Source of the DNA: Thalia democratica
Lineage: Eukaryota
NCBI GenBank assembly: GCA_965202585.1
Contig: OZ241829.1
Span: 29,760,001-29,824,000 of the forward strand
Length of the DNA: 64,000 nt
Direction: 5' to 3'
How positions within the stretch are numbered: position 1 is the stretch's first letter; each line of letters begins with the position of its first letter. A program made the position numbers and the translations under genes. Below are positions 3,201 to 33,613 of this stretch, piece after piece. The notes beneath the pieces are model-generated. The model did no database searches. It saw nothing but the letters and a program-made list of their open reading frames with translations, and was not told where the DNA came from.

Positions 3201-6200
3201 TTGGTTCAATGTTCTTGGTGTAGTTCCATTCACCATTCGATTGACAAACAAATTTCGAAGTTTCAGTTGAAAGTTCATATTCTCCATTACACGTAAATGA
3301 AATTTCATCCCGATAAAGAAAGTGATCGGGTCTTTTAGTGCGAGAGTCAACATTTCCATTTAGTAAGCTTGGTTGAGGACATTCTAAAAAGTTTTTAGTA
3401 TACTTTTACTGAAATTAGTTTTTGTAATCTAGTTATGATGTAAATGTGAAAAATATTATCTCAAGCCTACATTAGATAAAAAAATTGTACAAAAGTTTTA
3501 AAACTAGCAAAAATGGTTAGGAACTAAAGTTATGTAAGTGTAGTAATTTTATTTATTGTATATAAACTATAAATATATATATACTTGGTAGCAAACAAAT
3601 CAAATATTAAAACATATTAGTTTTAGTAAATATTAGTAAAAATTAGTCTGAATAAAAGTTTTAAGTGTGCTAACAGTTTAAAAAAGCAATCGTCTGTACA
3701 TAAAACGTGTTCTAGTACAAAAAAAGAAAAAACAACGTTTTATTTAAAAAAAAACATGGTTTTAGTGGATACAAAGTACAAATTAATTTAAATAATACAA
3801 CTGAAATTTGTTTAGTCTTTTTCAATAATTTAAGATCATAGGTGGGTCACCTTGCTTTATACAAATCCATCTTAATTTATGGGGTTTTGTCTTAGCTTTT
3901 AGATACTTTTTACCGCATAACAAAACTCAAGTTAACGTTTGAAATGAAACAAATTGACGTCGGTGAATTCAATAGGCTTCTTTATGTAAAGTACAAACTT
4001 AAAAGGTGGAAAAAACTGTTTGACTGAAGTTATACCTTCTTCTTAAATGTGAAACTAATCGTAAACAAGTATAAATAGTTTTTTTTATAGTTATAGATAC
4101 AAATAAATAAACTTTTCAACTTGCTTTATTAAGGTAAACGTTTTATAGACTATCAATAAGTTAAAACGCTCAAAAAATTTTAAGTGACGTTCTACGATAT
4201 AGACTTTATAATACTTAAGTAGTATTTGAATAACTCAATCATTAATTGCTAGTCTCGATCTCGCAGCTTTATTTTTGTAAACTACTATTCTGTATACCAA
4301 TACTTAAAATTAGTAAGCTCTTTATTGTTATACGTTGTTAACTCCGTTTATTGACATGTTTTTATTTATTTATTTATATAATACTTTTAATATAAGATCT
4401 TTTACGTTCATTGATGTTTTTATATTCCAACAAATGTACTTTGTTAAGATTTTTAAAAAGAAAAGATCCTTCTTTACTGTTATTCTAAATTTTATTACCT
4501 CAACATATGATGTAGTTGTTATATTCTACAAAAAAATGAACCATAGTTCAAACTTTAAGCTTATATATAAGAGAAGGTGTTGTTTTCGTAACAACAATGT
4601 CTTTGATTCTGAACGGCCACAACTCCAACAACCAAAAACACTTGAGGACTTTCTAACACGGAAAAATCCGTTAACATCTTTTTATAACAATTCACCTTTG
4701 ACGCATTCTCCAACGGAGTTGTCCAAACCGCTCTCGATGTCACAGTTTATGATCGGGTTTTCCGAATCGTAGGTGAACTCTGGATCGCACTCATACTCCA
4801 CTTGCACGTCGATGGAGTGCGTCGCGTTTATCGGTTTAGAATTTCTCACGATTTTTCTCCCATTTTTAATTTCATCAGGCAGAGCTTCGCAGCCTACGAC
4901 AAAACAGGTCATTTCAGTGTTTACATCATAATAGTACGAAACAAACAGTTACAGTTGTACTAACAGAAACGATAAAAACTGACGGAAATAAAATGTTTTT
5001 TGCTAAAACTAAAAAATAAACTTTCATCAAAGACGGCGGCAGTTTGTGGTTTGAAAGAATTAGTAATTATTTATTTTATTTTATTTGAGGTATAAACAAA
5101 ATAAAGATTACACATGTTTCAGACTTGAAGCTTTTTGTTTCAAGTTTTCGTCAGACTAAGTTTATTATACTTATAAACTCCGTATAAGTAAGACTTGAAG
5201 TATAAAGCTTTAAGTCTGAAACATGTGTAAATTATTGTTTTGTTTATACAAGAAACATATGTTTCTCTATAAAGCGCATAGAGCTACAAACTAAAACAAA
5301 ACAACATGACATATACTTAACCACATTCAAATATACCTTACTTTAGTATTCGGGCACGTTTTAACCCTTTTAGAAAAGTTTACTTTCCAACCGAAAACTT
5401 ACTTCTCGCGCACGATCCGACGGCACCGACCGGATCCGACGTCCACACTCCGGTGTCTCCGCACACTTTGCCAACGAAATTAGCAGGCGTCATGGTCAAG
5501 TTGTCGCGGCAAGTGTAGCTGACTCGGGTGCCGGGGTAGTAGGAGCCCTCGTGCACCCATGTTACCACGCGGTCAGCGTTTTCCACGACTGGAATCGCAT
5601 CGGCCATACACTGGTGAACTGCAAAATTTGGTTTTTGAATAGGGTCGTAGGTGCTGAGAAAAGAATATTAGTGAACAGAACAAAAAAATGTAAATTTGTT
5701 TTTAATCTGTACTGTAGACAACCTGATTAAAAAAATTCTATTCCGTCAGTCATCTTGTAAAATACACAATATTTCTCAAAGTCAAACCACGATTTAGATA
5801 AGTTTTAATTTAATACCAATTTAGGTTCCTTATACTTATTTAACGTTTACAAGCTTGAAAACCAGAGAAGCAGTCTCCAAGATCGCCTTGCCAAGAACCA
5901 TCTTCAGTGCACTGGATCGTGTCATCGCCTTCTGGTTTCATCTCGTACCCGTTATCGCAAAGGTAAGTGGCAACAACACCAACAGTATGTTGAGTGTCTG
6001 ACAGGCTTTCAGATATGGAATAATCTGCATTCGTCCTATTTTCAGGTTTGCCGCAGTCTGAAATTCAGTAACGTAAAACAATATACATCAGGAACATTGT
6101 TTCGTACTATATATTATATAAAGCCGGGTTTAGATATTGGGTAAAAAGTAAAAACTAACGTTTTTTTTTGGACTTCAAAAACATTTTATTACTACAAACA

Positions 6201-9200
6201 AATAGACCTAAATGAAAACAAAACTTACACTGTATAAAACTAAACTAAACTGTTTACTACAACTAATATTGTAGTTTGATAATATGGTCTTGTTTTTTAA
6301 GAGCTTTTAAGATTCTAGTTATAAAATTTTATGATTTAGTTTTAAAATACGTATTTTATCAAAATAAATATACCAAAAAAAAGATTCAACGCTAAAAGGC
6401 CGTTTGTAGGATTATTACGACAAGTAATTACATCATGGCGAAGTGCATGGTGTGTTTATAATCAAAAAACTACCGTGTTTAAACAAAACTACTTTAACTA
6501 ATCAAGTTCCACGGTTTTAAACTAAATGGTAGTAGTTTTAAACTTTAAGTAAAACTGATTGTGTCGTGATGCTTATTATAATAACAGTACATACTATACA
6601 TACAATACATACATTTTTCAAATATTTTAATTATTAAATAGTCTGCGGTCTCACTTACGTTATCAGTTACAATATTTAAAAACTGTTGGTTTTATATAAA
6701 ACTTTTGCATACTTAATTTTCTCGCTTTCCAAACTAGCTATCAATTCACTTACGCCTCACACACTCTGGAAGCGAAGGCTCAAACTGCCCGTTGATGCAG
6801 TTCAACACAGCCGTCGAGTCCGGATGGATCACGAATCTGTTGTTGCACGAATATTCAACCTGGAAAACTGCTTTCGCTGGACCGGTTTCAGTGTCTATCA
6901 TCTCGTACAAAGGAGTGGTGAAGTATCCATTTTTGATTTCTTCCGGATCGCCGCAATCTTAAAGTGAAGCAGTGATGGTTTATATATGAAAATAAAGTTT
7001 AGTTAGCTAAAACGTTTTGAACTTTTTTAGTGTTGTATGAAAACACAGCTTAATAAAACTTAGTTTACCCAACTTTTGTTTGTATCAACAGTAGTAAGTG
7101 TAGGTGGGGAAGTTTTTTAATAGTAAACTAGCTTGAGCTTGTACACAGATACACTTTACCTGTTATTGACGCGTTTGATAGGTTTGCAGTAGGTGAAACG
7201 ATTAAGATGTAGCATTTTAATACTTAAAACTATGACAAACGTTAAAGTTCTATACTACCTTACGATGAGGTTTTATCAAGTAAGTTAACCCAAAAAGTTC
7301 TTAAATGCTTAATATAATATTAAAAAACGTTGAAATTCAGTAAAGTCTTTACGTTTACTTTAGAATAAGCTGGCTTTAAATTTACTTATTTTCAAAACCG
7401 TTATTTATTTGTTTTTGTTGAAAGTCTGGAGTCAGAGAAATTCAGAAAATTAAAAACATTGTGTACTAAATTTTAGCTACATTAATATATTAATGCACTA
7501 TTCGGTATGTCTTTCAATTTTTGCATGACATAAAGTATTTTTTTACTTTTATTCAGTCATCAACAAAAATAAATATAGAATAAAAGAGCTATACTATTAT
7601 TAACAACTATCTTTAATTTTTTGGTAGTTTTTAAGTAGTTGTGTCACAAAAATGTGTATTCCATAAAACTAAAAGCTTTTGATGTTACAACACAAACCTA
7701 AAAACTGACTTTTAGCAATAATGTAACAAGGACTTTTCAAAAGTCCGTTCTTACAGCTCAACTAAGTAAGATGACTTAGGTACCGTAGCTTAAAAGTATT
7801 CATTGTTAAGAAACAAATTCTAACATTTAACACAATGAGGCGGGGTAATGTCCCATTCTCCATTTTGCAAACACTCAGCAGAGTTTTTATTTGAGCTGCT
7901 GATAACATAGTTGTCGCTGCAAGTGAACTTGACAATCGTACCGCTGTACTGGTTGTCGCTTTCCACACCATTTACTTTCATAACTTCGAGACTCAAGCCC
8001 TCAGTAGCAATGATGTTTTTACATTCTGGAACAATTTTTAATATTTATGTTTGTTTTATTGTAAATTTTACTTTGCAGTTTTTTAGGTTGTAAAGAATAC
8101 GCATCTAAAAAAATAAAACAACTTTATAAACAGTTAAGTTTAAATAAATCAATTAAAGGACAGCTACCTATTTTAATTTTTGCCAAATTTAGCAAATTAG
8201 TTGTTGATTTTTATTTGTAGAAATAAGCCTAACTTTATTACTTATATGTCTTCATTGGGTTTGCGCATTGAAACTTCTAAAACATACATTTTTACTAAAA
8301 ATTTTGGGTATAATAAAACAACATAAATGCTTTGAGATCCACAAAGATTCAAATTTCATTTATTAAAACAAGTTTTTATGAAAAATTAATTAGTTACCTT
8401 TTAAGCAATCAAAGCCACTTTTCTTCCAAGACCCTTCGTTCGTGCAGTAATGAGTGTTATCAGCAGACTCGGGTACCAGCGTGTACGGTGCTGCGCAATC
8501 GTAAGACACTTTGATTTCGACCTCCTCATCACTCCCATACACAGTCAGCTTGTCGAGGACAGTTTTCAATGTGTTTGGCACAACCTGGGACGCACCGCAG
8601 TCTGTGAAGGACAGTTAGTTTTAAACCAGAGCTTACTTGAAGACAAGGTCTGCAGTCCGTTTTATAAAGTCTAATTTTTCAATTTAAGTTTAAGTAATGT
8701 AGAAATTAAGATGTAAACATCGGCGAAGTAGCGGCACAAAGTTCACCTGGGTAGCAGACGAATGGACTCCACGAGCCGTCAACGCCACAAGTCGAGCTTG
8801 AAGTGCTGGTGACAAAGTTGTTGGTGCAGGCGTAGCTCACTTCCGTGCCGTTCAGGAAAACGCCCGACCTTTCGTTTTTGTATTCGTACGCGTGAGTTCC
8901 GTCGGAGTTGTTGACACTCGGCACATCATCACATTCTTGGATAACAAAATTTTAATACTATTTTTGATTTTTTAATCAATTTTAATTCTAAATAATTAAT
9001 GAAAAAATCATCACAGCTCAAAGTTAATAACGTTTACTTTCGAGTACCTTTTATGCAGAAAAGTTTTGTCTTGGTCACCCATTTTGCTCCCAACTCACAC
9101 ACATACGTTCCATTAGCAAACTCATCGCTGAAATGGTAACCTTCTGTGCAACTGTACTCAACAACACTGTCGATTACGCTTCCGTTTGCTAGCCTTGTAG

Positions 9201-12200
9201 AACTTATGAGAGTCCAATTCGCGTTTTTTAGGACTGGTGGTACCAGGCAAACTGCAAAGTTTACAAAACTGTGTTGTATGTTTGAAATCATAGATAAGTG
9301 TGTATCCTTTAAAGCGTTTTATGAGTTTTTAAGATGTATACAGTTAGTAAACTACTAACAACTAAAATTTTAAAATTAATGTATAAAAGCTAAGAAAAAT
9401 AACTTATTACTTTTAGATGAATGTAATGAGTTGAATAAGCATACTTCAAGCTTTATTACAACTGACTGAAAAATTATAAATTCATCTTGTACAAAACTGC
9501 GCATTATTTATAAGCAATGCACAAAGCACCATCAAAGAAAACACCAACTTGGAGCACATTGAGGAGCGCGGCCGAAGTCCCAATTTCCGTCACCGCCGCA
9601 AGTCAGTTGCTCGGGTTCGCCCCATTTGAGACTGTGGGAGGGATCGCAAGTGTAGCTCACCGTTGTTCCGCTCCAAAACTCGCCGTTCACGTGGCTGAAG
9701 GTTGTGTGCCAAGTCACCTTGCTTCCGTCGTATGGCTGAGGGCACTCTGTATCGGGCAGCGAGTAATAAGCTAGTGTTTAAAGTAGAAGTAGTACAATTG
9801 TTATGCGTATTTCATATGTAATTATAATATAGTACTATTCTAAACTTAAACTTTATTCAAATGTGAATTATACTTATTATTCTCAAAAAAGAATGCATTC
9901 TAGAAAACGGTTTTCAATTGAAAAGTTTAGTTTTTACAGCTTATTCAATAGTTTATGCTGCTGTAGTTCAAAAACCAAAAATGCAAAAATGTCATTTTAC
10001 TTGTAATGCACGTAGGAGCCACAGAGATGTCCCAGCCACCTTCTGAGCACTCATAAGTGTAGTCGGCCGAGCTACCACCACTGAAAGTGTAGTTCTCGAT
10101 GCAAGAATACCTGTAAGCGTCGCCTTCGAGGTAAATGTCTTCACGAGCCTGACGCTCAGGTACGACGGTTCCGTATGGTATGGTTTCGGGGCTCGGGCAA
10201 GCTTAATTGAAAGCAAGGTTGAAAGAAGTGACATTTTTTACAAGGCTTTTGAAGTAATAAGTAAGTTGTGGTAAAAATATTGATTTTTAAACATTGAAGT
10301 TCTCGAAAATTTTAAGTTTTTTGTTGAACACTTTGTACAAAAGAAACACAATACATACCGTTTTGAAGTAAAATTTAGTACTTTCGTTATAAATAAAAAA
10401 AATTAAATGTATTGAGAATTGTAAAGTAAAGATGTTTATAAAGTTAACTTTTTAATAAATGTGGGCTTTAAGATAAATTCTAATTTTTTCGCAACGTCAT
10501 AAAATTTTTATTCAATTAAACGTGCACAAATGCACTTTCAAGTAATACTGTTACTAAATAAAAACAAGTTAACAACAGTATGACAAAAAAGTTTTATATA
10601 AAACAGTTCCGTAACATTTTAGCTTCATACACAAAATCAGCTCTTTTAAGTTGTACGAGATAATTTGTTGTGAAAACAATTTCATATATGAATCAAAGTT
10701 TTAATTAAAAGCCTGAAATTTAAAAGTTTTAAGATCAGGTTCCGTTTAGCATCTCAATTATATATAAAGATTTAAACCGTTGAGACACGCGGGTACGGAG
10801 GAGTTGGTTATTCCGTTTTCCTTGCACTCAACAATGGAAAGACGAGGATAATTCATGTAATAGCCTTCTTCGCAAGAAAATGTTGACAAAGTCCCGGGTA
10901 CATGGTTTGTTGTGTCATCTACTATTGGGCGAGTGTCTATTATTAGACCAGGCCTCGAGACGATGTTTAGGCATCCTGTAGAAAACATTTTCGGTTTTAT
11001 AAGTTTGATATATGCTTGAAAGTTAACCGTGACTTAAAATAACGCATACTAGTCTTGAAAAGCTTTTGCGAAACCATTTAGTCCCATACGAAACACTTAT
11101 TTTAGTTTTTTTCACCGTAATTGAACTGAAGTTGCAGAAATAGTTGTTTTTTAATTTTATTCAAAGTTGGTAAACTTAGTATTTAAAGTAAACTTCTATA
11201 GAAATGTTTAACTTATAGTTTTTCGTGTATTATTAGTAAACTTCAATGCTTTACCTTCACTCAAAGTTTAACTTTTAAATAAGTTTTAAACATTTTTCTT
11301 TATTTTTAATAAAATAGTAAACAAGTAAAACGTAATTTGAAGTTATTATTTACTAAAAGCCTGTGTACTTACATATAGAAAACATAACTTTTTTACTAAG
11401 ATAAGTTCTTGTATTTATACTGTTGCGAAAAAAAAGTATCCTTAAAAAATTCCAAAACTTTATAATAGGTTTTAAATGTTATGAAATAAAATATACTGTA
11501 AACATTTTTTACTCATCAAAACTTTAAATTTTTTTATAGCTGAATTAATTTTGAAAAGTAATTTTACAAGTGAAAAAGCGCTCATAACTTACGTTTAATG
11601 CATTGAACTTTATCAAAAGTCCACGATGAATTAAAATGGCAAGTAGCTTCTACAGAAGCTTCTTTGGTATGCACATTGTAGTAACCTTCTTCACACCTGA
11701 TTTCAACAGCGGATATGAATCGAGCCGACCAAATACCGTCAAAATATTTAGTTGCTTTTATGATAGAGTTTGGAAAGTATAACGGTCCACAAACTTCAAA
11801 AGTTTAGTAAACAAAGTGAGATTTTATTTTTAACATATTTGTTAGATAGTTGCCTTAAAATATGTTGATTGATGATTGATTTAAACGATTAGTTTATTCT
11901 CTATATATGCATATTAATAGCTTCAAGTTTATTTTTCAGCAAACTTTAAACAAAAAATCTCAAGCTCAGCAAAATTTGCAAACCTGGAAAGCATAAAACT
12001 TTCGGAGACCATTTCCCATTGGTGCCGCATGTGGTCTCGTTGCCTACTTGCTCGTACTTATCATTGCAAACGTACCGAACGACTGACCCAGTTGCCACTC
12101 GCAAGTCAGGACTTGTTGTTACGACGTCCAAAGACACAGGTTGGTAAGGCGCACTGTTTTCTACAGTCGGTATTTCGTCGCATACTGTTGTGCAAAAAAA

Positions 12201-13848
12201 ATATAAGGTTTTGACCTAAAAGGCTTGATATTGAATTTTAGTTATAGACGATTTCAGTTTCGTCTTGTTTCATTAAAAACTGTGTTAATTGTTAGAGCTA
12301 AAAACTTAAGATAAAACGCAGTGACTTACGAATTACACTGCTTATGATAGTTATTAAATAGTGTCTTTAGTTTGGTAGTATGTTTTTTGTTTACAGCTTT
12401 GTAAAAGTTTTATTAAAGAGTATAAAAGCTTCAGTTTTTAATTTTAAGACTATAGTTAGTTGTGAAGGTTTAAAACTGTTAAATTCTGATTACGTAAGCT
12501 ATATAAAAGCTAAAGCAGTTGTGATTTTCACCTTATTGATAAAATGTTTAATTCTAAAAAAAAACAAATAAACTTATCCAACTAAAACCATTCATAGATT
12601 TCTAAAACAGTGAATGGCTGAGCATAAGGAAACTCTATCTTTTTTATTTATCTCTAAAAACATAACTTCTAAATTGACAACTTTGAAAATTGTTTAAACT
12701 ACTTTTTTTCATAGAGCGAAACTTTCAAACTATTATGAAAAGCATCAGTGTTCACAACTGACATTTGAAGCACTCAGGACGAGCTTCCTCGGCCCAGCCT
12801 TCCTCGTATGTGCACGTCAAGGAAGGACTCGCTCCCTCCTTCATCGAGTATCCGCGGTGGCAGAAGTAGTTCACTTGCATCATCAGCACGATCCTGTCGT
12901 CAGACAACGTGTATTCCCCTCTCCGTCCGTCGGCGTTCGGTACATGAGGCGGAACCAAGCAAGCTAGAGATTTGTTTGTTTGAAAATATCACACTCAAAA
13001 CCGCAACAAAACGTGTAAGCAGGGAAAGTTGACGAACTTTGAACGCACCAAGGTGCGGTCTCTATGTTCCACGTTCCGTCTTGCCGACACTTGCGAGTGC
13101 TGACTTCGCCTTTGGCCAGGGAGAACTTGTCGTTGCACGTGTACACCACCCGCATGCCGGTCCAAAAAAAGTATTTTTCAAACAGGTATTCGGTCGTCCA
13201 CGTGGAATAGTCTCCGTCGGGTGGCTTTGTGCATCCTTGCAATTATTATTTTTTTATTAAAAACAGGTAAATACTATAATTTACATACATGCAAATGATA
13301 AGAAAATGGGCTAAAAGTTAACCTCTAATGTTCCCGTCGGGACATATTGGTTTTCTTTTCCAGCCGTCATCTCCACACTCAACAGTACCAATGAAATCAT
13401 AAGGCACTGAATATTTACACTTGTATTTCACAACATCACCGATATCATAGCTTGATTTAATTTGGCCGGTGTAGTTGCCGTTTGTTAGCGGAGGAGGATC
13501 CGTGCAATCTGGTGTGTTTGTGTTAAGCAAGTGAAATCCTTGAACATAACAGCTTTATAGCATGAGCAGAACAATTTTAAATGTTACATCTTAAAATAGA
13601 TAGTGCAAAAGTCAATCAAAAGTATGTTTTTAAAAATCTAAAAGTAAAGAAGTACCGACATGAGATGCATTTCGGGTAACTTTTTCCGGAATCCCAAGTA
13701 AAGTTTCCGTTTTCGTTGCACACGACATACTCGGATGAGTTTGGATGGATCCTAAACCCCTGATCACACTCCAGCATGAATTTAGAGCCGTATATTGGTT
13801 CTGGTGGACCGACAAACAATCCATGTTCCAACTTTGGTGGTTCGCAGA
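297..13848 (-). CDS. Array of 23 single-exon Sushi/CCP (SCR) domains
   Basis: Symmetric phase-1 exons, each encoding a C..C..(W)..C module: 13660-13848, 13323-13508, 13038-13235, 12763-12963, 11984-12184, 11593-11793, 10778-10975, 10001-10201, 9549-9746, 9048-9251, 8747-8935, 8398-8601, 7825-8025, 6754-6957, 5863-6057, 5403-5618, 4696-4893, 3189-3383, 2811-3011, 2387-2584, 1384-1584, 921-1112, 297-470. All lengths are multiples of 3 (174-216 nt). Confidence 0.93.
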
Positions 13849-16800
13849 CTGATGATAAAACAATTTTCAGTAAGAAAAAAATAGTGCTTAATCGACTTTT
13901 TAAAGTGCTGTTTCTTATTAGATGCAAGTAAGAAAGTATGGTTTGTAAATAAAATGTTAAAGATATAGTTCAAAACCTTATTTTTCAAGAAAAAAAACGT
14001 ATCTAATGTTTTACTTATTTTTAAATTGAAGTAACGTTTAAGTTTATAAAATTCATCAGTTTTTATTTTTTACATGTGCGTGAGACTTATTTCTGTTTAA
14101 AAAGTTTAAGTTATTTTTTTCTTAAGATTGCAGATAGGTCAGAATACTTTAGAGAAGTCCTCTGGTGAAAACAATGCTAGAAATGTTTTTATACAAACTG
14201 GATTTTATTCATAAGTTATTATCTGAATTATAAAGCATTTCTTTAAAGTTTTAAACATCTTTAAAATGTTGAATATATGTTTAAAGTTGCACAGATATAT
14301 AGTGGTAAAAAGTACTCTCTTGGAATTTTTTACCATCAAAAAACATTAAAAAAACTATTTTTCAGTATAAAAATTGTTTTTTTAGTACTTAATTTCTGTA
14401 CTTGTAAATATTTTCCATGCAGTTTTTTTTAATTTAAGTTTTGAAGACCTACGATTTTTAATTGAAACTTTTATAAAGAATTTAAAAAAATAATTTAGGA
14501 ATTATTATATAAAATATGTCTAGTATTACTTTTTTTTTTTAAGTAACTTTGCTATTAATTTTAAGTTTTACAGAAGCCATAAAATCTAACATTTTCAAAA
14601 CATCACAGATCAAAATGAAAACAACCTTTTAAAAATAAGCACATTTAGTATGTTTTAACAAAATTAGAAGGAAATAAATACCTTTATGATAATAAGATTG
14701 AAAGTATTTTATAAAAAATTAAAACTATTTTTAAGGTTAATTTTTTTAATTAAACAAATTTTACACAGCTATTCTTTTTACTGCAGTTTTGTCCTGTATA
14801 CAAGTTATATTTAATTCATTGTGACAATAAACATCAAATATCTTAACTTACGCATAATGAACTGCCAGACTATACTGACTACATTGCAAGACGTGCACTG
14901 CATTTTTACTTTTCTTGTTCTGCAAATTATTATTTTTAAGTTTTTGTTTAACCTTTAGAATTTGAATTAAAATAACATTTAATGAAAAAGTTTAGAATTT
15001 TAGTTTTACTGAAAAATAAGTGAGTGAACAAATGGGTTTATTTTTCATAAGCAATCAAATAGTTTCTACTTCTCCTCAAAAAAATCTATACATCTTTATA
15101 TCGATTTAACTAAGATTTAAATGGCTTATAAGCAATATTTTCAAAAAACTTTAAGTTTTTTATTGTTATTTTGTAATTTTACTGAATCATGTGCTTTGTT
15201 AATCTTGTCAACTGATTGTCACACTAAATTTATCAGGTGTAACTAATTTTAAATAACTATTAAACTCTTCTTACATGTAAACTTTGCATAAACATTTTTA
15301 AAGTTGTAAATAAGTCCTATTAATCAAATATTACTCATTATGGTATATCTTAAAAACTTTGGTAAAACTATCTTTGGATTAACTTATCTTTAAAACCGTT
15401 TCATATCATTATACGTAAAACCTTATGCTATTAAGGTGCACAAGTTGTTTTTGTTTAAAAAAGCTATAACTTACTTTTTTGCAGCTTAGAAATTTTTTGA
15501 ATTCACTAACTTTACAACTGCTAACTATTAAAACTTTGAAAATTTGTGTTGTTTACTAAAAGCTTACATCTAGATGCAGTTTTTCTAAAGTTACGTCATA
15601 CAAAAACTAGGAGTACTACACTCGATCTTTTTCAAGTTATTTTAGTTTAAAACTAGCTACACAAAATATTATTATCTTAATTATAATATAAACTCAGGGT
15701 TCAACAGTTTTATTTTGTTTAATGTGCCAATTTTCCGAGAAAAAGTTGCTCGTGGGCCAAAAGCAAAAAGTCTTCTGCAGGCTGCAACTATTTCAATAAA
15801 TGTTGTAGTAATAAAAAAAAGTTATTTTAAACTAAAGATGCTATAAAACTACAATGACAAAGGACCAAGTGCCCAACGAATTATGCAATTAATTTGTAGC
15901 CATTGTAACTTGATTTATTAATTCCTAATTTGTTTTAAAACTGTTATCGAGGGATTACTTTAGTTGGTTAAGTTCTCATTTTAGAAAGACTGATTTATAA
16001 AAAGAAAATGGTTAATTATATGTCTAACAAAAAAATAAATTGCCTGTTTGAAATAATGAAATTAACTTCTTAGTGTTCTTGTGAAAAATAATAAAAATGT
16101 TTGTATCCACCTGCTCTTCAATATAATTAGCATTCAAATAGTTTGAAAATGTAAATAACGTGTTAATAAGGAATTCAAATCCTTCTCTAATGCAGTGCTT
16201 TACTTTCGCTTAGTTTATCTATTAATAAAATAATAAAAAGACTTCAATTATTATGATATGTAAACTAGTCTAGTTTCTAAAATAATTAACAATGATTAGA
16301 ATTAAAAATAGTTTTGCTGAAGTTATATTTTGCACATAACTATATATTATTCATTTTAACAAAATATAGTTCCCACAGAACTTTTTATATAAGTTGAAAT
16401 GACTCTTATTGAATAAAAGCATATGTTTTATTTTGAAAAATAAAACTATCAAAGTATTCAAATTTATACACGCTTTTTTTTTTACAAGTAAAAAGTTTTC
16501 AACAAAGGTCAACACTTTTCAGTCTAACACATTAAATCAACGTAAGCGTTAGGATTCTACTCTTTTAAAAAATATTGTAGGCTAAAACAAATTATAAAAA
16601 TGGTATTAATTTTCTTCCTGAAAAGTAAAGTTTAAAAGATAGTACTTCATAAAAGTTATTGAGTTAAACTGTTTCAAAACTATATAGTTTTGTTCTTAAA
16701 GTCTTGTTGTTAAAGCTTTGTACACAAGTAAAATAAAAACATCTATGTTATTAAGTTTTATCACAGACGGTATATTACTAATATTGATTTTTATTATTTA

Positions 16801-19800
16801 CTTTTTAAACTTTGTAAAAAAAAATTGATTCTTAAACTAAAAACAAAAAGTGGTTTGAATTGTATTTTGTGTAACAAATCTGAGTGTTTATATATTGCTT
16901 GCAATTTGAGTTTGATTGTGATTCTAATTTCTATCAAAAAAAAAAATCCAAGGTTAAAAAAAAAAGAAAAAATAAGTTTTAAAAACAAACTTTTATAAAA
17001 TTTTGTATCTATTTAAGTCAATAACAGTTGTTTCAAATAAATTAATATTAGTTGAAAAAAAAAAACAATACGGAAAAAGCGGCCAATTAGTATTAGAAAA
17101 AGTACATTTTGATAAATTTCATGATTCATTTTTTGTCAATAAAATTCGGTATGTATTAGTTTAAAATACTTAAGGAAGGCTGAAAGCTTTTTTTATGAAA
17201 GGATTGTTTCTGTGTCTTCGCACAAAATCCGGACGTTTTCTTTCTGTGAAAAAATTAAAAAATCGTTATTAACTCACGTCTTTAAACAAGCACAAATTCA
17301 GTCTGACCGTTGTATTCCAGATCACCAGTGAACTGCACGTCGTTTTGGTACTGGTGGTTGAAGTACTCGAATCTTTCGAGCGTGAACTCGTCGGCCGCCA
17401 CAGTTTCCTTCTTGTATTCTTTGAACGACAGCTCGAACTTTGCCTTCACTCCGCTCGGGTTGTAAACTCCTTAAAAATACACGTGAGACGTGGAGGTATA
17501 AAGAAATGCAGTGACGAGCTTTTACAAAGTTCTTAAAATAAAATGCAGCAGGACACCAATAACGTATCTGCTTTAAGAGATATTAATCTAAAAAATGAGT
17601 TGGGTCAAAAAATTATAAAAAAGCTATGATACTGTTTAAACGAACAAAAAACTAATCTTAAAGTTATAAAGATTTTTATTATTGTGTTAGTGTATAATAA
17701 AACTGTAAATTACTTATTAAACACAAAAAACTTGATGTGCGTGGCAAAAATTAGTTCAGTTTAGTTTATTTAGGTTTTATAAATTAATTTTAAATTAGTT
17801 CAAATAAAAAACTACTATTAAAAGAAAAAGTCTAGTAACTCTGAAATTAGCTTGAATAGACAATTTTTTTTAATCAAAAGTAAGTAAATATAAGCTGTTA
17901 TAACTAATATTACTTTTATAATTATAATTAAACTTTTAAGAACTAAAATGTTCTCAAAACTGTAAGGTACGCATTTCACGTAAAGTACGCACTTTTAACT
18001 GGTTTCTTGGTGCGTACCCTACCAATGTCATTATATTTTTATTTTAGATAAATACAACCATGAGCTTTGCGACTAGTTTTTTTTCAAAATTGGTATCAAC
18101 TGTTTCTAGACTTCTCGTGAAACCAACCGAACTTGATGTAAGGAACTCTCCCTTGCGCGTTCGCCCCGATAATAACCGGCAACTGATAATCGAGGTAAGA
18201 AGATTGCAGCTTGCCGTTAACTTTCAACTTCAGTAAACCGTTCCACGTTCGGATACCGGGGTCTCCAGTGCGACCGAGACGCTCCATTTCCTAGTTTAAC
18301 TTTTAGCTATCATCTTAATGGTTGATGATAAACTTTAAACATTTTAATCTTGCTTCTAGCTTAAGCTACTAGTATATAATTTCTCGTTAATTAAAAACTC
18401 TATAGACTTTTATTTTATTTTGTTAAAAAACAGGTCTAAAGTTCTTGTATAACACTTCCAATAATATTTTAATACAATTTATTGCTTGTTTTTCATTTAA
18501 GTGACTGCACCTGAAATATCTAATACTTTTTTATATTTCTAAGCTAAATAAAATAAGTAAAAAAAAATCAAAAAACTTTATCTGTAAGGAGACCGTACTC
18601 GCCCCAATTTATAATCCACTCAAATTCAGTCCATTCCTGCTCTTCGAGAACATCTAGCGGAATTTCGTGAAGAACAATCGCCTAAAAACAGTTAAAAATA
18701 ATAAGAAAATATCTCGTTAGCGTTTTATGTTGAAAATAAAGTTTAAAACTAAGTTGAATTTCTTTTCGTTAGAACTTTTAAAAAAAACTTTACTCTAAAT
18801 GGAAACAAGTCTTTCAATTTTAAATTTGCCCCAGATAACACCATTTTTACACAGCAAACCCTTTTTTTTTGGTAGCAAAATGTTTATGTAAGCTTAATTT
18901 TTAGTATCATATTCAAAAAAAAAAGTAAAAAAAACAACGTGTTGTTCGGCCCGACCGTCTTCAACGCACACAACTTTTTTCATGCCACTCATTCTGCACT
19001 TTCCTTCAGTTTTGAAGTACCTCTCGTCCGATCTTGCTGTCACTGTAAGCTTGCCTGCAAGAGCAGTTTGTTGTAATTTAATTTTTACACGCTAGCCTAA
19101 AACAATAAAAATAAATTGTTTACCAAAAAATTAAGCAGTGGTATGCTGTTCTATATAATTGTACACTTTTAAAAATGTTTCAAAAATCACATTATTACTA
19201 GTTTCAGCATCAAAACATTTTCGTAATTTACCTTTCATTAAGTTGTTTTGTAACAAAATGTATATTCTCTTGTTTTTTAAATGACCGCCTAGGGGCGTTA
19301 GATGATTGTTTATCAAATCACATAATAAAACTTTAATAGTTTTTGTTTTTACGCTCAGTTAGCCATAAGACCGTGCGGAAGGCACACCAAATTTAAGACT
19401 TTGAGACACTAATTGAACTTAAGAACTTTTTAATGATATTCATTTTATAAGAACTTTATATTTAATTGTATTATTTTATTGCATTGTGCTTAGTTTAGTC
19501 ATCGTTGTGCATGAAGTACGACATATATTAAGACTCTGTATTACAAGTAAAACCTATTTTTGTATTTAAGATTGTGACATTCAGACAGTTTTAGAACATT
19601 ATTAAGAACATTTTTAGTTGTAGAATTTTGTGTCTACTTGTTCTTTTTATTTTCCCAGTTGTATTCTACTGATAGAGTAGCTGCTCTATCACTTCTACTT
19701 TCTAGTTTTCATATTAATATTACTTTTTCAATAAACTCACTTCATTAAAGAAACTATACATATTAAGTTTATTACATATTTAATAGTTACTAAGTTAAAC

Positions 19801-22800
19801 CTAATGAGTAAGGTAAATTCAGTAAAAGCCTTAAGAGCTAATCACTCAAAGCGTTCAGCTCAAAAAAGGGGACTTCCCCCAATTAAAAAAAGTTCCTACC
19901 ACTGGCCTAAGGCTACAGTTTTACAAACAGAGTCATAGTTTATTTTGTATATAACTTCGTACACGTAAAAATCTAAAAATTGCAAACTAATTTCTATATT
20001 ACATAAAACTTTAAACAACTAACTCTGGTTCCTGTCGTAATGAACTGAAAGAAGGGGGTGTCCTCCTCTCTGAAAGCTTATTCGCTCCCCTCCCGCTTCG
20101 AAACCTGAACGCGTAAATTAATAATCAAATTAACCTGACTAACTTTTGTAGTTTCCTTAAAAGTTAACGTTTAGTGTTTAATTTAGTATTAAAATTAATA
20201 AACAGTTTTATACACTATAACTAAGATAAATTAAACTTTTGTAAATAGACTTGAACAATAAAGCAATCATCACAACAAAATATCAAAGAAAAAAAATCAC
20301 CAACCGGCCGCGTGCTCGCACGGGAAATGGGAGCAGCCCCTGAACAGCTCCTCGTTGGTCAGCCGTATCGGAACGGGGTCTTCCCCCACGGTGATGACGC
20401 GAGGGTCGGGCGAGTTGTGCCACTGAGTGATCATCACCCGCCGCATGGCCGCTCCGGCTTCACCCGATTGGACGAGGTCTCTCAGTTTCATCTTGTACTT
20501 GTACACGTGGCTGGCGTGCCGCGTCATCGGCTCGTTGGCCGCCGGGCACAGCGTTTGGAGGAGGGGCGGCATGACCGGGCCTGTGTGACGTAATAACGCT
20601 TTGGGTGATAATGTGTGACGTAATAACGCTTGGGGTGATATTGTGTGACGTAAAATTTGTGTTGTAAGAATGGGTGATGTCTGATTAACAAACGAGTTTG
20701 ATAAAATTTTGTTAACTTTAAATGACAGTGAAAATCTATATTGAAGATTGCTAATTTTTTTGTAACTGGTAGCAGGTATGTTAAACATTGATTTTTTCAT
20801 AATATTTATTCAATACTTTTCTTGAAGTTTTGGAACTATTTGTTAGAATTTTAAGCAGTTTATTAAACTTATATCTTTTAATCATTTTTGCAATAAATCC
20901 AGTGAAAAATTTGATGAAATAGTTGTGAATAAAAACGTTTAGAGATGAGATTGTAAAAGTATAACGACATTTTTTTATACAAAAATTTTTCTAAACTTTA
21001 GCTTTTAAAACAGTTACAGCTAATGAAAAGTACATTAAAATAAAACTTAGATAAACACTTTAATATTTAAAATTATTTCTCTATATCAATGGTCTTCAAG
21101 GCGTGCACATTTAGGTTAATTTGCTTTATATAAAAAAGTTACAATGGTTAAAAAAAAATTCAAATGACGTTTTTTGTTTTTTTCTATGGGAAAAAGTTAA
21201 TGATAACACAAACTAACAGTTTTTAGCACGTTATTTATATATTCTATCTCATAAAACCAAAATAAATTCTTGTTCTTGATAGCAACTTACATTTTAATAG
21301 TCTAGTTTGCAAATAATTTATTTTTCAGTAATTTAGTGTGCACAGTGTTTGAAAATATTAAAAACCAATGCTCTAGAGTCATTAAATGTTTACTTGACAA
21401 CAACAAAAATTAAAAAGGTAAAATTGTTTTAAGGTATTAATAATAAATTGAGAAGGTTTATTTAAAAGTTTTTAAACATTCAGTTTATAGTAGACGTTTT
21501 CTGATACTGTCGAAGTATCTGTTGAAAATAAAGTATACAATTTTAAAACAAAAAATACTTTTTATAAGGAAATTGTTGTTTATATCATTGTTAGTGACGT
21601 TTTCTTTGAAATATTTTTCAGTTACAAAACACGTGCTGATCTCTATCCTGGACTTTTCATCTTTTTTATTATTATCCAAGTTGTCGTATACAAACCTAAA
21701 ATAAATATGAAACTTTGCTTTTTTTACTCTAGTCGTTTAGCAGTCAAAAACCGCTTACGTTTTTATTGAATTTTATATATCAACAAAACAAGTTTAAGCA
21801 CAATAACTTTTTAAACAACTTTAAAATATTTGTATGATACCACGTTAGTTAATTTTAAAAAATTTTGGTTCTAAAACCTTTGAACATTTAATAGCTGTAA
21901 AAATGTCTACTCTTTTAAAGAGAAACAACATGAACAGCAACCAGTGAATTAAAGTTTTTACACACTACTACAATAGTTCTAGACATACTAATATAAACTA
22001 AGTTGAAAATAGTTATAATGTTTACAATAAGTTTTTGTTTTTAGTTTTATAGGCTAAAAATGACAAAACTTGCACTTATAATCTATTCAGGTATAAGATA
22101 TTTAAAACTAATGACGAAGTACCTGTACTGATAGGAAGGTTCACTATTTTCATTTTCGGGAAAATACTTTTCAATGTAAAATTTTGTCTTTTTACTGTTT
22201 GAAATTTTCAGTAAAACAAAATTACCTGGAAGAACCTGTTCTGTAAGTACATTAAAATTTTTTTTTTGAAGAAACGTTCTTAGCTTTTTTGTTTTTTACG
22301 CCAAGTAATAAGTACACTTTATTTACAATCAGTAACATAATTTTTGATAAAAGTTTTAAAATGCAAGAATTGTAAAACATTTCTATAACTACATACGAAA
22401 ATCCTACAAAGTTATCTCTTAGTTTCTGATTTACTTCAAACCTTCCCTGACCAGTTTCAAGAACGGTCTCGATTTCGGCCACTTGTTGCAAGTGAAATTC
22501 GATGAGGCCGCCTTGAGACCGGTGCAGTCCCATATTTCACCAGATTTAGTTTTATTTCTCAACAGTTTAATACCTGTTTGCAAGGATTAGTAGATTAACT
22601 TTAAAAGAAAGGTAAAAAAAAACTTAAGTCAAATTAAAAGCGATCCTAGCTGTTTTTGTTTTAGAAAGATGGCTACTGTACGACTGGATAACCGATAACT
22701 GTGGTGTGAAACTCGATAACTAAAAGGTTTCTTCATACACCAGGTGCTTAAACCAGACTTTTTGGACGCTTTTTTTTTATCGTTTTATAACCAATATATA

Positions 22801-24931
22801 CACACTGCCGGAGGGGATGTTCAACATCACTGGTTAAAAATATATACTACGGTCATCTAAAATGAATACTGTAACAAATTAAACCTTATTTATAAATAAA
22901 ATTTTTATATGTAAACAAAGTTGAGAACCTTAACAAAGTATTTAACATTAAAAGAGTTTAGTTTGGGTTTTTGACGTAAAGCAAGTTTTATAAATATTTA
23001 ATTTGTGTTTTACTCGTAAACAAAAGTATTACTTAAGTTTAAAAACCTTTTTATTAAAGTTTGTGATATACTCATACTGTGATTAAGCTACTCTTACTTC
23101 TAAAGTAATATGCAATGGTCTTTTGTACAACTCTCTTCCTGAAACTTTGTTAACAAATGTAAAAAATAGTAACAGTTACCACATAAAATTTTTGCATGCA
23201 AAACAAACAAACTGACTGCAACTCAACCCATCTCCTTGGAAACCAGGGTTGCACTTACACTTGTAATACTCCTTATTCTCGTAGTTGTATTTCAAGCAGT
23301 AAGCATCTGCGTGACAAAACTGACAAACGTCTTTTTCAAATCCTGTATTTTAACAAATTCCTACGTGATGTCATTTTGATTATAACTTATTTTTGTACAG
23401 ACAACAGATGTATTTTATTTCGAAAATAAAGTTAAATTGACAATAGTTGTATTGAAGCATTAATTCTTTTTTTATTGTAACTTACTTTTTTGACAACATG
23501 TTTTACCAAATCTAAAAACAGTAACGAGTATAAATTTCTGGTTTAAGATGTTGACATTTCAGAAAACATGAGTTATAATTTAGTAATTGTTCAGTAGCTT
23601 TGTAAATTTTAACACTAAACACCTGTATAATAATAAATATATAAAAAATACACAATTTGTGTTACATTAATGTGCTACGTAAACAATTATTGTAAAGTTA
23701 TTACAAGTTTAAATTAATTGTTGTGCAAAGTTGTCGTAAACATATTAACTGAACTAACTTAGTTTTTTTAAATTTTATTTCGTAAATGTATGTTGTTTAA
23801 GGTTTATGTAAATTATGCAGTAATACTATAAAACTTATTATGCTTAGATAAATATAATACACAAAAAAACAAAAAAATACTAGTTATTTTAAATCTTTTT
23901 GTTTCGTCATCTAAGCAAAAGCCATCGACTTCATAGGTTTCACACTTGTCTTCCCCACCACCTAAAACATAATTCAAATAAAAACAACAAAAAGAGCAAT
24001 AACAAATGGCTGCTAAAGTAGAGATAAAACTATTTAAAACTCTAAAATGTGATTCTATACTTTTTTACGGTCTTAACTAAAGACTTAAAAAGTTTTTAAA
24101 AACATAAAAAATAATTCTTTCAATATCCCTGGTGGCGTCAAATCTAGTTAAATTAAAAGACTGTCAGTTATTAATCCTATGTGCAGTTTGTTTTTGTTTA
24201 CCATCAAATTAAAAAAATAATTTTATTGTTAGTTTCAATTTTTTTTTCAATACGGTATTAAACTACAAGATAAATAATTGAATTATATTTGTAGTGCGAT
24301 AATAAAGACATTTTTTTAAATTTTGGTACTAAAACAACTAGTTTTGAACATTAAAACTTTTAACAAAAATATAAAAGTCATTGATTTAATATATAATAAA
24401 AAACAATTTATATATTTTCCTAAATAGTATTTTAAATTAATCTTATAAATAAAGAAAGCAGAAAAATATTACAAGTTTATATAATTTATAAATATAATAA
24501 TAAAACATAAATAAACTATTTTTTGTCATTTTTTTAAAAATAAACTGTAAATGTACATATAGCTATGGTTATATAATATTACATCAATTTTAATAAAAAT
24601 GTTGATAAAATATATATTTGAATTTGATTAAAACTTTAATCAACGTTTATTACATTAGCTGACACTGATTCTCCTAAAAAGATTTTCTGAGCCTTTTAAT
24701 TAACTTCTTTAATGTTTGAGTTTTAGTTTTCTGATACCAAAAATACTTTTAAAAGTTTTGATATCAGCAAAGAAACTCTACACTATAATTAAAAGTTTAT
24801 GCTTAAATAAAACTAATCTAAATTCAAAAGGAAAACTTTTCCACTAAAAAAATCTGATGAAAATAAATTCACTCACCATTTGTTTTTGAAAACAATAAAC
24901 ATAAGAACAAAAGTGAAAAGAAAAAATTCAT
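297..24931 (-). CDS. Large secreted/extracellular modular protein: signal peptide - EGF - heparin lyase I (PL13)-like domain - >=23 Sushi/CCP domains (34 exons in window; 3' end lies beyond window start)
   Basis: Hand-spliced GT-AG exons with consistent phases: 24877-24931, 23881-23961, 23217-23306, 22435-22573, 21559-21695, 20305-20580, 20024-20104, 18939-19054, 18577-18681, 18128-18290, 17308-17469, then 23 phase-1/1 CCP exons from 13848 down to 297. Continuous ORF of about 5950 nt. The 17308 to 13848 junction is inferred (phase-compatible, no separate start or signal exon seen in between). Confidence 0.8.
1790..2245. repeat. Intronic element with inverted subterminal arrays (aaaattgcacga / tcgtgcaatttt) around a ggtaagggtt(ag) core
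   Basis: About 5 copies of an (aa)ttgcacga-like unit on the left, about 5 inverted copies on the right; the A-rich centre has two gggtaagggtt(a) motifs. Confidence 0.7.
17308..22573 (-). CDS. Heparin lyase I / polysaccharide lyase family 13-like catalytic domain (8 exons)
   Basis: Spliced translation carries, in the correct order, motifs matching recalled bacterial heparinase I: WDCTG (WVAVG), KSRIEIS (KGRTELS), MITQWHNSPDPRVI (IFAQWHGAPSRTLV), FQRGGHP (VEQGGYP), KLTVTARSD (YFYIKANSD), LHEIPL..EWTEFEWIINWGEYG (AYKMPF..CWITFDVAIDWTKYG), VIIGAN (ILIGRN), PYIKFGVY (YYFKFGIY). The 3' boundary of exon 21559-21695 is uncertain (alternative phase-1 donor right after EIST). Confidence 0.85.
20582..20653. 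repeat. 30-bp minisatellite, about 2.4 copies, at the 3' end of an intron
   Basis: Unit tgtgtgacgtaataacgctt(t/g)gggtgata(a/t) at 20582, 20612 and partially at 20642. Confidence 0.9.
22683..22778 (+). repeat. ~100-bp dispersed repeat, copy 1 of 3
   Basis: Shares gtg..tg..a..cgataac.aaaaggttt..t...caccagg....a.acca.a..ttt.g.gc(g)tttttt with 37101-37202 and 37519-37622. Confidence 0.6.
23217..23961 (-). CDS. Exons 2-3: EGF-like domain
   Basis: Exons 23881-23961 and 23217-23306 translate to GGEDKCETYEVDGFCLDDETKRFKITNAYCLKYNYENKEYYKCKCNPGFQGDGLSC: six Cys with the EGF C-terminal signature CxCxxGFxGDGxxC. Confidence 0.85.
24877..24931 (-). CDS. Exon 1: N-terminal signal peptide (MNFFFSLLFLCLLFSKTN-G)
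   Basis: ATG at 24931 (in-frame upstream ATG at 24943), hydrophobic core, consensus GTGAGT donor in phase 1 matching the next exon. Confidence 0.8.
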
Positions 24932-27900
24932 TTTAATATGCATCCAAGATGCAAAAATTTTATAGAAATGTTAAATTAACTTTATACAATGGTTTGCGTG
25001 TTTAAGTAAAGATAAAAGTTTTTATTAATCATAAACAGTTACTTTTATTAACATACTAAAACTATTTTTTTTAATTTCAACCACGTATTTTATTGCAATG
25101 CACAGATTAAAACTTAATTGTTTTGCAGCTTATGTTATATTTTGAAGCTCTTAGGTAAACAATGAGCATATTTTTAAACATAACATTAATGTATTATGCT
25201 TTACAGAATGAACTAAATTAAAAATTACTACGACTAGTGATGTTTATTAGTCATAGTATAGTAAATACAGTTTGTAGCTTATAAACGTATAATGATAGCG
25301 ATCATTATGCTCCATATAAGTTTTTTTACACTAATGTTAGCTTTAAAAACGATTTACTTTTTTTGACAATTTTTTTTTATTTCTTGTTTAGTGTGTTATT
25401 GTTTGTAAAAAATTATTTCAATAATTAGTTTAACTTTTTTCGTGAATGACTGAAGAGCTCATTTGCGCAAATTTTCAGACTATACTCTTACGACTTTTAC
25501 TATTAAACTAAAAACTTTTGAAACATCTGTATCATCTATAACTATAATATACTTTAACTGATAAAATGTATTGGATTCACTTCACGACCATTAGTAGAAA
25601 GAATTAAAGAACATTAAAAGGCAAAACAGCTGTATCTGACCACATTAGCAATTGTAATGTTTGTAAAAATTAAAAAAATAACTGTTAATAATTTTGGAAT
25701 TTTGAAAGAATGTAGAAGTAAATTTGAGACCCTGATAAGTTAAGCTCTACTAATTAAACGTTATAAAAAATTAAACAATTAACTAAACCGGGTATTACCC
25801 ATACACTAAGAATTTTTGATTAGTTTGATATATATTAGTTTAACAATTTGTAAGTATTTATGTAACATACTATTTTATTGTAGTTTATAATCTTAATTTA
25901 TAAATGTTTATATACTGTATTACTTAAATTTTTTGTATACTTAGTTGTTTATCACTATTTTTTACTTATTTTTGCACAGTATTTTGTTGATAATGACTAA
26001 TGAAAAGTCGAAACGTCGTCATGCGAATAAATTATAAACTTAGAATGTGTTTCTTACTGAATTGTTATTTAAAAACTCCAGTATCCCCACCTGTTTTTTA
26101 CTTATATAAGTAAGCACAACTGGTTCTAAAAAGGTAATACAACTGGTAAAACAAAAGTACAAAAAAAAGATTGTTCATTGTCAACAAAAAGATTTTTTAA
26201 GCACCTATCCTTTAAACCATTATTTTTACAAAACTTGTATGCATGTTTTGCAAACACCCTGTACTTTATAAAATTGGGTTGTAAGTAACTTTTTAAAATT
26301 AAACCTTTTAACTTTGTTGAGGTTATATTTTCATACTTTATTTCTATTCGTGTCGACTGTATAGAACTATTTGTATTAAAATAACATACAAGTCTAAAAA
26401 ATTAACTTTCTAAAAAGTGTTTGCTGTAAAAACTTTATTTGTAAGCGGAGATTCATGAGTTTGAAAACTTACTTTTTCTATCATAACTTAAAATTCAATT
26501 AACGTTTTCGGTTATTTAGGAAAAACGTCTTGCTTAGTATCTATTAAATTATAATAGAAGCACATCAATTCAATGGTTTTTTGTCTGCTTTAAACAATAA
26601 TTCGTTTAAATAGTTTTGTTGTTAAATTTCTTATTGAAGTTTTAAGAAGAAGATTTTCTTTAAACTATCCGATTTTATTCAAATTTAAAAAACTGCTCTA
26701 TGGCTTTTGCTCATTGTACTTTTAATACCAAAAAACTTCTGTTAAAACTCTGGCTTTAGAAAAGTTATGTTTTAAACAAAAAAGTTTATAGGTTATTGCG
26801 TAAAATACCAACAAGTAATTTAATTAACCAAATGTTTACAACAATACAAATTTTATGTTACAATAAGCTTCTGATTAGTTAAGTTTCAATTTTCTCCTTA
26901 ATAAGTATTAAATTGAGATTGTTGAGAAGTTTTGATATATAGTACTAAATGCATACAAAACTCAATATTATAATGAATACGACGCGCGAACATGTTTTTG
27001 CTGAACAGGATACGGCTCACGAAAAATAAAACTGTGGCCCGCAAACATGTAAATTTAGTCCGCTAAACCAGAAATTGTTGAAACTCATATTAGATATTCT
27101 GGGTTTTTTTGATAAAAATAAAAAGGGTCACGTTGTAACTATAACTACAGCCGCGAAGGTTTTTGTGTTTGAAATTATCCCCGCGACTATCAGATTTCTG
27201 CCGAACCCTGTTTTAAACCAAGAAGTAAATATATCTATTTTAAACATTTTGAGTAAAATTGCCGTTTTCAAATATAGCTTTTTGAATTTAAAAACTCGTA
27301 AAGTTTGCAATGCAAACATTGAATGACAAACTTCTAAACAAACAGAACCAATTTAAGCTCATTACAGTAAACGCTGTTGCATGTATTTAAAATATAAATG
27401 CAAAAACTTTGTAACATACTGCGAAAAATTTAAAAGTACTAACAAGTTTTTTCACCATAAACAAAACTGTTTTTTAGAAAAGAAGTTTTAGCTATCATTT
27501 AAAAAAAAGTTTATACTTTATATATATAAAAAAAAAACTTTTTATATAACAAATTGTTGTTAACAAGTTTTGAAATTTATTTTAAGCGAAAAAACAGAAC
27601 TGTTAGGAAGTTTGGTTATTAAAAAGATTGACATTTAGTTATGTTTAGAAAACTACCATAACATAAATGAACGATAAACACTACTAGAATCTATAAAAAA
27701 GAAATTGTATCTTTAACTCAAAATAAATCATGAAAACGTTTTGTAACATATATGTAATGTTTTATTAATTAAAAAAGTCATTGAACTAGTGTAAGCGAAA
27801 CCAATAAATTAAAAAAAAAAATACTAATACAATACTGGAAAAAACTGTAATTCAGATTTATACCCGTAAGTTAAAAATGAAGTAGACCTATGCCGGAAAA

Positions 27901-27988: not shown

Positions 27989-33613
<5,625 letters not shown>

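Follow-up and report, generated by a model that had tools for sequence, protein, structure and literature searches.

In the textbook view, animals degrade heparan sulfate and heparin with hydrolases, for example heparanase, and cleavage by eliminative lyases is confined to bacteria and certain fungi. We analyze a stretch of 64,000 nucleotides from the pelagic tunicate Thalia democratica (assembly GCA_965202585.1, contig OZ241829.1, positions 29,760,001 to 29,824,000 of the forward strand), hereafter called the window, which carries on its minus strand a multi-exon gene related to bacterial heparin lyase I (HepI, CAZy family PL13). The described HepI enzymes include BtHepI of Bacteroides thetaiotaomicron (PDB 3IKW, 3INA), BeHepI of B. 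eggerthii and the HepI of Pedobacter heparinus. H151 of BtHepI is the catalytic base, with R83, K353 and R344 nearby (bioRxiv 10.1101/2023.02.14.528460); the equivalent of Y357 contacts the product, and a Ca2+ ion bridges the thumb and the jelly roll through the side chains of E222 and D346 and the carbonyls of W248 and N345 (PMC13714783). In the tunicate protein, the conserved blocks of HepI are collinear over ~260-270 columns at ~20% identity; the differences are a gene with 7 introns, an EGF exon upstream, possibly Sushi exons downstream, and a C-terminal tail of 55 residues. We propose that this gene codes for the catalytic domain of a PL13 family member from a tunicate, that it is a functional and host-integrated gene whose product is likely secreted, and that the product probably cuts a sulfated uronic-acid polysaccharide; we put the probability of this reading at about 0.62.

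Two other groups of lyases are useful for comparison. First, the remaining PF14099 jelly-roll lyases (PL20-like and uncharacterised Bacteroidota proteins) belong to the same Pfam family as the tunicate protein and have the same C-terminal strand motifs, but they are without the thumb and the long insertions, so that they offer ~200-230 matched residues as against 331. Second, the PL8 (Lyase_8) enzymes are glycosaminoglycan lyases of an eliminative type thought bacterial or fungal, and yet they are encoded in choanoflagellates, sponges and cnidarians, for which vertical inheritance with loss has been proposed (Richter et al., bioRxiv 10.1101/211789). PL8 is unrelated in fold and family, being an alpha/alpha toroid with a beta-sandwich and not a jelly roll, and it has been reported in no bilaterian, whereas the tunicate gene is that of a chordate.

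Eight exons with AG acceptors and GT donors, in agreeing phases, extend from 22533 to 17282 of the window; spliced, they give 1158 nucleotides, which are 385 amino acids and a stop. The spliced open reading frame (ORF) contains, in this order, SRIEIS, QWH, RGGHP, ARSD, W..F...I.W..YG, IIG.N and YIKFG|VY, where the bar marks a splice point, the last motif being interrupted by the final intron. This agreement of motifs and splice phases is far beyond chance. The region is AT-rich (26-31% guanine plus cytosine, GC), and GC-richer islands sit on the minus strand. The exons are listed below with residue numbers of BtHepI, taken from the PDB alignment; the sister copy is the nearer of two tandem copies of the gene.

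22442..22533, minus strand: lyase exon 1, ATG at 22533, donor AG|GTTTGA, phase 2; 92/92 positions identical to the sister copy
21559..21695, minus strand: lyase exon 2, the EKSRIEIS block (K81, R83, E85) and the beginning of the omega-loop region
20305..20580, minus strand: lyase exon 3, 66% GC, the rest of the omega-loop region, QWH (Q149 and H151, the catalytic base) and most of a shortened, Cys-containing thumb
20024..20104, minus strand: lyase exon 4, the QRGGHP block, with E222 replaced by Q and Y226 by H
18939..19054, minus strand: lyase exon 5, the TARSD block (ANSD in HepI); the preceding intron occurs only in window-type copies
18577..18681, minus strand: lyase exon 6, the W..F.W.I.WGEYG strand block; fused with exon 7 in seven other loci
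18128..18290, minus strand: lyase exon 7, IIGANAQGRVPYIKFG; A in place of R344 and of D346, N345 and K353 retained
17282..17469, minus strand: lyase exon 8, VYNPSG (Y357) and the 55-residue tail; stop TAA at 17284-17282

Exon 1 encodes N-terminal strands that match WVAVG..YRFELK of heparin lyase I, and the equivalent paralogue exon aligns with the HepI N-terminus.

For homology, HepI references were collected by PF14099 (Polysacc_lyase) searches of Bacteroidales genomes, found via a 16S pattern, and of 301 Bacteroidota genomes. This gave four thumb-bearing and twelve other Polysacc_lyase genes; the thumb-bearing type is rare among the 301 genomes sampled. One of the thumb-bearing references (L133) matches BtHepI (PDB 3IKW) with 759.6 bits (E 8e-228) and is near-identical to it in the alignment, so the templates are genuine HepI. 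In hhalign comparisons, a profile of the tunicate family aligned with the four HepI genes at a probability of 98.8% (E 5.5e-17) over 270 columns, corresponding to window residues 41-342, and with a non-redundant profile of 27 HepI sequences at 99.1% (E 9.3e-19); the alignments to Bacteroides HepI cover 256-270 columns. The probability was 98.0% (E 2.7e-13) for the family minus its most bacterial-like paralogue and 95.1% (E 3.3e-8) for the window protein alone, and the reversed family, as control, gave 0% (E 0.88). The same query reached E values of 1e-15 to 1e-16 with PL13, of 2e-4 or worse with non-PL13 Polysacc_lyase proteins, and of 0.03 or worse with unrelated ORFs. The profile thus singles out genuine PL13, which it matches more strongly than other jelly-roll lyases. 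Against a hidden Markov model (HMM) built from HepI only (Z=1e8), the paralogue at C1:49.16M scored 84.7 bits (E 3e-20) and two other paralogues 34-38 bits. MAFFT alignments of the exon pieces on the HepI scaffold were unstable, and one of them misplaced the QWH exons. As a lead only, the ESM Atlas features of one exon point to jelly-roll lyase clusters at 0.89.

The catalytic residues are the second line of evidence. The window protein retains all of K81, R83, E85, Q149, H151, K353 and Y357, and so does every paralogue model that covers them, except for K81, which is R in the C1:49.16M paralogue (L155). The span from K81 to Y357 is 281 residues in the window protein and 276 in BtHepI, although its parts differ in length: the omega-loop region is 16 residues longer in the tunicate protein, and the insertion between the QWH strand and the GGxP strand measures 51 residues from H to G, as against 73 in BtHepI (22 shorter). 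This Cys-containing insertion is weakly alignable at its ends.

The third line of evidence is selection on the exons. Compared with the nearer tandem sister copy, the exons are 98.2% identical (1137/1158) with 0 indels, whereas identity over the seven introns is 93.1%, and indels are numerous there. Fifteen of the 21 coding differences are synonymous and six are non-synonymous, which corresponds to a Nei-Gojobori synonymous divergence (dS) of 0.063, a non-synonymous divergence (dN) of 0.0066 and a dN/dS of 0.105. The lyase gene is real, and its exons are under purifying selection. DNA contigs from three public runs (two studies, two organism labels) span the whole stretch, including the exon-intron borders. 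The bacterial look of the protein, and nothing further, might suggest bacterial contamination or an assembly artefact. Such an origin of the sequence is ruled out by the GT-AG introns, by the animal genes (P450, EGF, Sushi) that flank it on either side within a scaffold of 85.7 Mb, by a host repeat inside one intron, and by the same exon-intron DNA in independent runs of two studies; its probability is negligible.

These results largely uphold the preliminary description of this DNA, which had read eight phase-consistent GT-AG exons with 7 internal introns, about 390 amino acids and the same motif series in order, and had assigned the motifs to the conserved blocks of heparin lyase I. The exons and all the quoted blocks are present, and the PL13 assignment is supported at the level of homology by the significant family and single-protein matches given above, set against the values for other Polysacc_lyase proteins and for the reversed control. 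Its further claim of a PL13 thumb holds for the position of the insertion, while the size falls short of that in BtHepI.

Several observations weigh against our reading of this gene as an expressed and active lyase. By itself, the window protein reaches no more than 24.5 bits with the HepI-only HMM; next to the 84.7 bits of the C1:49.16M paralogue, the window gene is, judged by its sequence, a divergent member of a family that is plainly heparinase-I-like in its least changed copy. Pfam searches with the eight single window exons returned nothing relevant, and in the PDB no lyase was matched either by phmmer of exon 3 or by a 78-position profile of exons 6+7. Two Ca2+ ligands, the side chains of E222 and D346, have been lost: Q and A stand in their place in the window protein and in most paralogues, so that the Ca2+ site characteristic of PL13 is missing from these copies; the cleft residue R344 has likewise become A and Y226 has become H, while N345 is kept. 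HepI assays and purification buffers contain Ca2+. The form of the protein that starts at the ATG at 22533 has no signal peptide. A search of public RNA runs for the stretch and for its largest exon gave no match, and the predicted product of the window copy is absent from a library of 1.84 billion proteins searched by phmmer with exon 3; expression and every splice junction of the window copy are argued from sequence, conservation and analogy.

Two alternatives follow this evidence closely. First, the window copy could be a young silent duplicate on its way to a pseudogene, with the other family members alone in use. The window type is without RNA or predicted protein on record, whereas for a paralogue a spliced fragment is known that probably stems from a transcript, and two other family loci contain stops. 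However, the ORF and all splice sites are intact in the window and sister copies, and the low dN/dS has prevailed since their split; thus, a silent duplicate is very unlikely. Second, the domain could be a non-catalytic glycan-binding module of an EGF/Sushi matrix protein that has kept the lyase fold for binding. The lost Ca2+ ligands and R344, the H at position 226, the shortened thumb and the adhesion-type modules around the domain would all fit such a role. On the other hand, the catalytic set is kept wherever it is covered in all seven compared copies, across 29-35% identity and with a single conservative change (K81 to R), and such retention is unexpected for a domain that only binds; we therefore regard the binding module as unlikely.

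For the preferred reading of a catalytic lyase, the following mechanism can be proposed by analogy with BtHepI. The enzyme would act by beta-elimination on a sulfated polysaccharide that contains uronic acid, for instance heparan sulfate or heparin-like chains. His131 of the window protein would be the base and Tyr326 its partner, and Gln129, Lys45, Arg47 and Lys322 would provide charge neutralisation and substrate binding. Cleavage would proceed without the Ca2+ bridge that ties the thumb to the jelly roll in the bacterial enzymes. The protein would most likely be secreted with the order signal peptide, EGF and lyase domain, and it may be extended by Sushi domains through a phase-1 donor in the last lyase exon.

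This arrangement rests on exons around the lyase exons, which are the following.

23217..23342, minus strand: EGF-like exon, phase 1-1; Pfam EGF_3 with 29.2 bits against a cut-off of 28.5
24877..24943, minus strand: candidate signal-peptide exon, 22 codons with a hydrophobic core, donor ATG|GTGAGT (consensus), phase 1
13660..13848, minus strand: first downstream Sushi/CCP exon, phase 1-1; Pfam Sushi with 30.9 bits

Lyase exon 1 contains a phase-1 acceptor, CAAG|GC at 22512|22511, and an alternative form of the exon begins at 22511. This acceptor fits the phase 1-1 EGF exon upstream, and the ATG at 22533 may be other than the true start. The EGF exon is probably spliced onto the lyase at 22511; it is identical to that of the sister copy at 125/126 positions, and its flanks are 96.5% and 93.6% identical. 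The candidate signal-peptide exon lies outside the duplicated block, which stops at 23967, and its assignment is putative; with it and the EGF exon, the full model would comprise 442 amino acids. Tunicates trans-splice, and an alternative is an mRNA that begins near the ATG at 22533 via trans-splicing. At the other end, lyase exon 8 has phase-1 donors after 17326 (ACTG|GTGATC) and after 17308, the former homologous to the donor used in P0129, the spliced fragment of a paralogue described below. The first Sushi exon could join such a phase-1 donor, so a fusion of lyase and Sushi by alternative splicing is possible. The EGF_3 exon upstream and the Sushi exons downstream, in compatible phases, fit the setting inside an animal gene that had been described earlier.

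A Sushi/CCP array of more than 15 exons, mostly of phase 1-1, occupies 277-13969 on the minus strand and runs off the start of the window; the sister lyase copy is likewise followed by an array of this kind (L008 516-2892). No convincing signal-peptide exon for a Sushi gene was found between 17282 and 13969, and the array as a separate gene with an obvious signal-peptide exon of its own in that interval was rejected. A consensus donor, GTGAGT, stands after 17278 (window 17272-17284), 7 nucleotides past the lyase stop; its phase, 1, is that of the Sushi exons. This donor may have been left over from an ancestor with read-through, or it may belong to an intron in the 3' untranslated region.

The window gene is one of a family in this genome. 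A profile of exons 6+7 gave 18 matches at at least 12 loci (about a dozen) on four scaffolds. The 85.7-Mb scaffold carries another two copies, 45 and 98 kb upstream of the window gene, which makes three tandem EGF-lyase units: window 17000-23967, G000:C5:29732247-29739207 and C5:29679055-29686016. Both outside copies are 94.302% identical to the window over 7037 columns (blastn), and they differ from each other despite these equal figures. The block of similarity ends sharply at window 23967, and the two outside copies have a different candidate first exon upstream. Six further loci could be modelled and contain the full set of these blocks, or the majority of it, in unchanged order; the identity of these paralogues is 29-35% to the window protein and 32-61% among themselves. 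Some introns are common to window-type and other copies, such as the one in YFKxG|xYNPSG, and two are specific to the window type, one before TARSD and one between exons 6 and 7. In the other paralogues, a Cys-rich exon takes the upstream place of EGF, and a short exon for a helical tail stands downstream in place of Sushi.

The paralogue at C5:26.36-26.44M, at a distance of 3.4 Mb from the window gene, illustrates these relations. It shares family, intron and catalytic residues with the window gene and is 35% identical to it, but a Cys-rich exon replaces the EGF exon, a helical tail exon replaces the Sushi array, exons 6+7 are fused, and a spliced fragment is on record. This fragment, P0129, is a protein of 204 amino acids in a public collection (source 'merc'); it derives by splicing from the C5:26.36M paralogue, and its source is probably a transcript. 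P0129 confirms three predicted paralogue junctions, including the shared YFKxG|xYNPSG intron. Six-frame PF14099 matches on the paralogue exons reached up to 24 bits, below the gathering score of 29.9, whereas the spliced P0129 scored 34.9 bits, above it. No lyase in the PDB was matched by P0129, and its AlphaFold2 model, with a predicted local distance difference test score of 51.5, is too low in confidence for use of the fold. The tail after the lyase domain (residues ~139-203) is predicted, at low confidence, to form two long helices; it comes in part from a small exon conserved between paralogues, and it has no counterpart in the window copy.

Of the modelled copies, the paralogue L155 (G000:C1:49155001-49165000, minus strand, exons ~8539-4242) looks most bacterial. 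It is 30% identical to the window protein and is the sole copy that keeps both E222 and D346, and it also keeps R344 and N345; its AQWHG and GRND motifs are bacterial-like. Two loci, G000:C5:17960097-17960305 and G000:C1:36246912-36247112, contain in-frame TGA stops and are probably pseudogenes.

The phmmer search of 1.84 billion proteins with exon 3 found related exons, split by introns, on two short Tara Oceans contigs, so other marine eukaryotes carry the family too. Three giant repeat proteins (DUF11, LTD) among the same matches were rejected as spurious, the two ocean-metagenome fragments alone being real. A search of JGI metagenomes found no related locus, and two protein searches returned only the paralogue's own fragments. 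In a protein search with an alignment of HepI and exon pieces, the named proteins among the best 120 of 710 matches are all Bacteroides enzymes.

The origin of the family is considered from these data. Phylogenetic analysis placed the tunicate sequences together on a single long branch, outside the 16 sampled Bacteroidota enzymes; the sampling is narrow, the outgroups sit on long branches, and the tree carries no information on a donor. The exons have 50% GC and a GC content at third codon positions (GC3) of 0.61, within the 0.58-0.76 of neighbouring host exons, so the composition is host-like. A recent transfer, which the foreign-looking exon GC might have suggested, is excluded, as this GC equals that of the neighbouring host exons. 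The family is old and has long resided in the tunicate lineage, and a bacterial origin is plausible.

We consider two possibilities in the following. First, a bacterial PL13 gene may have entered the tunicate ancestor, or an earlier one, in one old transfer, followed by intron gain, fusion to EGF and Cys-rich modules and expansion. The Bacteroides names among the best matches, the rarity of the thumb-bearing type in the sampled Bacteroidota genomes, the lack of any animal PL13 description in the papers searched, and the one paralogue that is still strongly bacterial-looking, with its Ca2+ site kept and its 84.7 bits, all favor this scenario. The tunicate clade is, however, not nested in the sampled bacterial enzymes, its composition is fully host-like, the paralogues are as distant as 29-35% identity, and Pfam Polysacc_lyase is listed among the domains of corals (PMC6214176). 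We give such a transfer a little less than an even chance. Second, the gene may be an old holozoan or eukaryotic one, inherited vertically and lost from most animals. The PL8 lyases are a precedent (bioRxiv 10.1101/211789), and the deep paralogy on four scaffolds, the intron positions common to window-type and other copies, and the intron-bearing relatives in ocean metagenomes would agree with it. Yet no named eukaryotic relative outside this genome was retrieved from the protein library or the JGI metagenomes, and the patchy distribution would demand very many losses, so vertical descent is a tenable explanation, somewhat short of an even one.

The preliminary description had argued for an old transfer from bacteria to animals. 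Its age is supported by the at least 12 deeply diverged loci; its bacterial or Bacteroidetes source is not, given the long branch outside the sampled Bacteroidota and the host-like composition, and the phylogeny indicates neither nesting nor a donor. The same description had known of no characterised metazoan PL13, and we found no description of an animal PL13 in the papers searched. It had also stated that animals normally use hydrolases and not lyases, a rule to which the PL8 lyases of holozoans are exceptions (bioRxiv 10.1101/211789).

What the locus reveals is a chordate with at least a dozen PL13-type genes, under selection and with catalytic residues kept, in which the lyase domain is probably joined to extracellular modules of animal type. 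If the enzymes are active, sulfated glycans would be remodelled in tunicates through a chemistry so far unknown from bilaterians, with a possible bearing on the tunic or house matrix and on feeding. Heparan sulfate is required for house inflation in Oikopleura (PMC3390340). A bolder idea, which we consider rather doubtful, is that a chordate lineage uses its expanded set of PL13-type lyases either on polyuronides from the diet or on the heparan sulfate or heparin-like matrix of its own body, and that in the window-type genes the choice between the stop and a phase-1 donor a few codons before it would switch between a soluble EGF-lyase and a lyase anchored to a long Sushi protein. The copies without the Ca2+ site, beside one with it, form a natural series on the role of the Ca2+ bridge in heparinase I, and the family is a clean test case for old transfer versus ancient inheritance with loss. 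The C1:49.16M paralogue would be the best family member for a first expression.

Some minor features of the region were also observed. A multi-exon cytochrome P450 gene lies further upstream at 27992-33658 on the minus strand (Pfam p450 with 58-87 bits per exon, GC3 0.70-0.76). The intron between lyase exons 4 and 5 contains, at 19191-19914, a very high-copy repeat of the host genome, over which the summed contig depth of each of the three runs rises from ~150 to 10,000-130,000. A 30-bp tandem repeat of 2.4 copies occupies 20582-20677, immediately before the acceptor of lyase exon 3; one run under another organism label has exactly 30 bp fewer there, so the repeat copy number varies beside this splice site.

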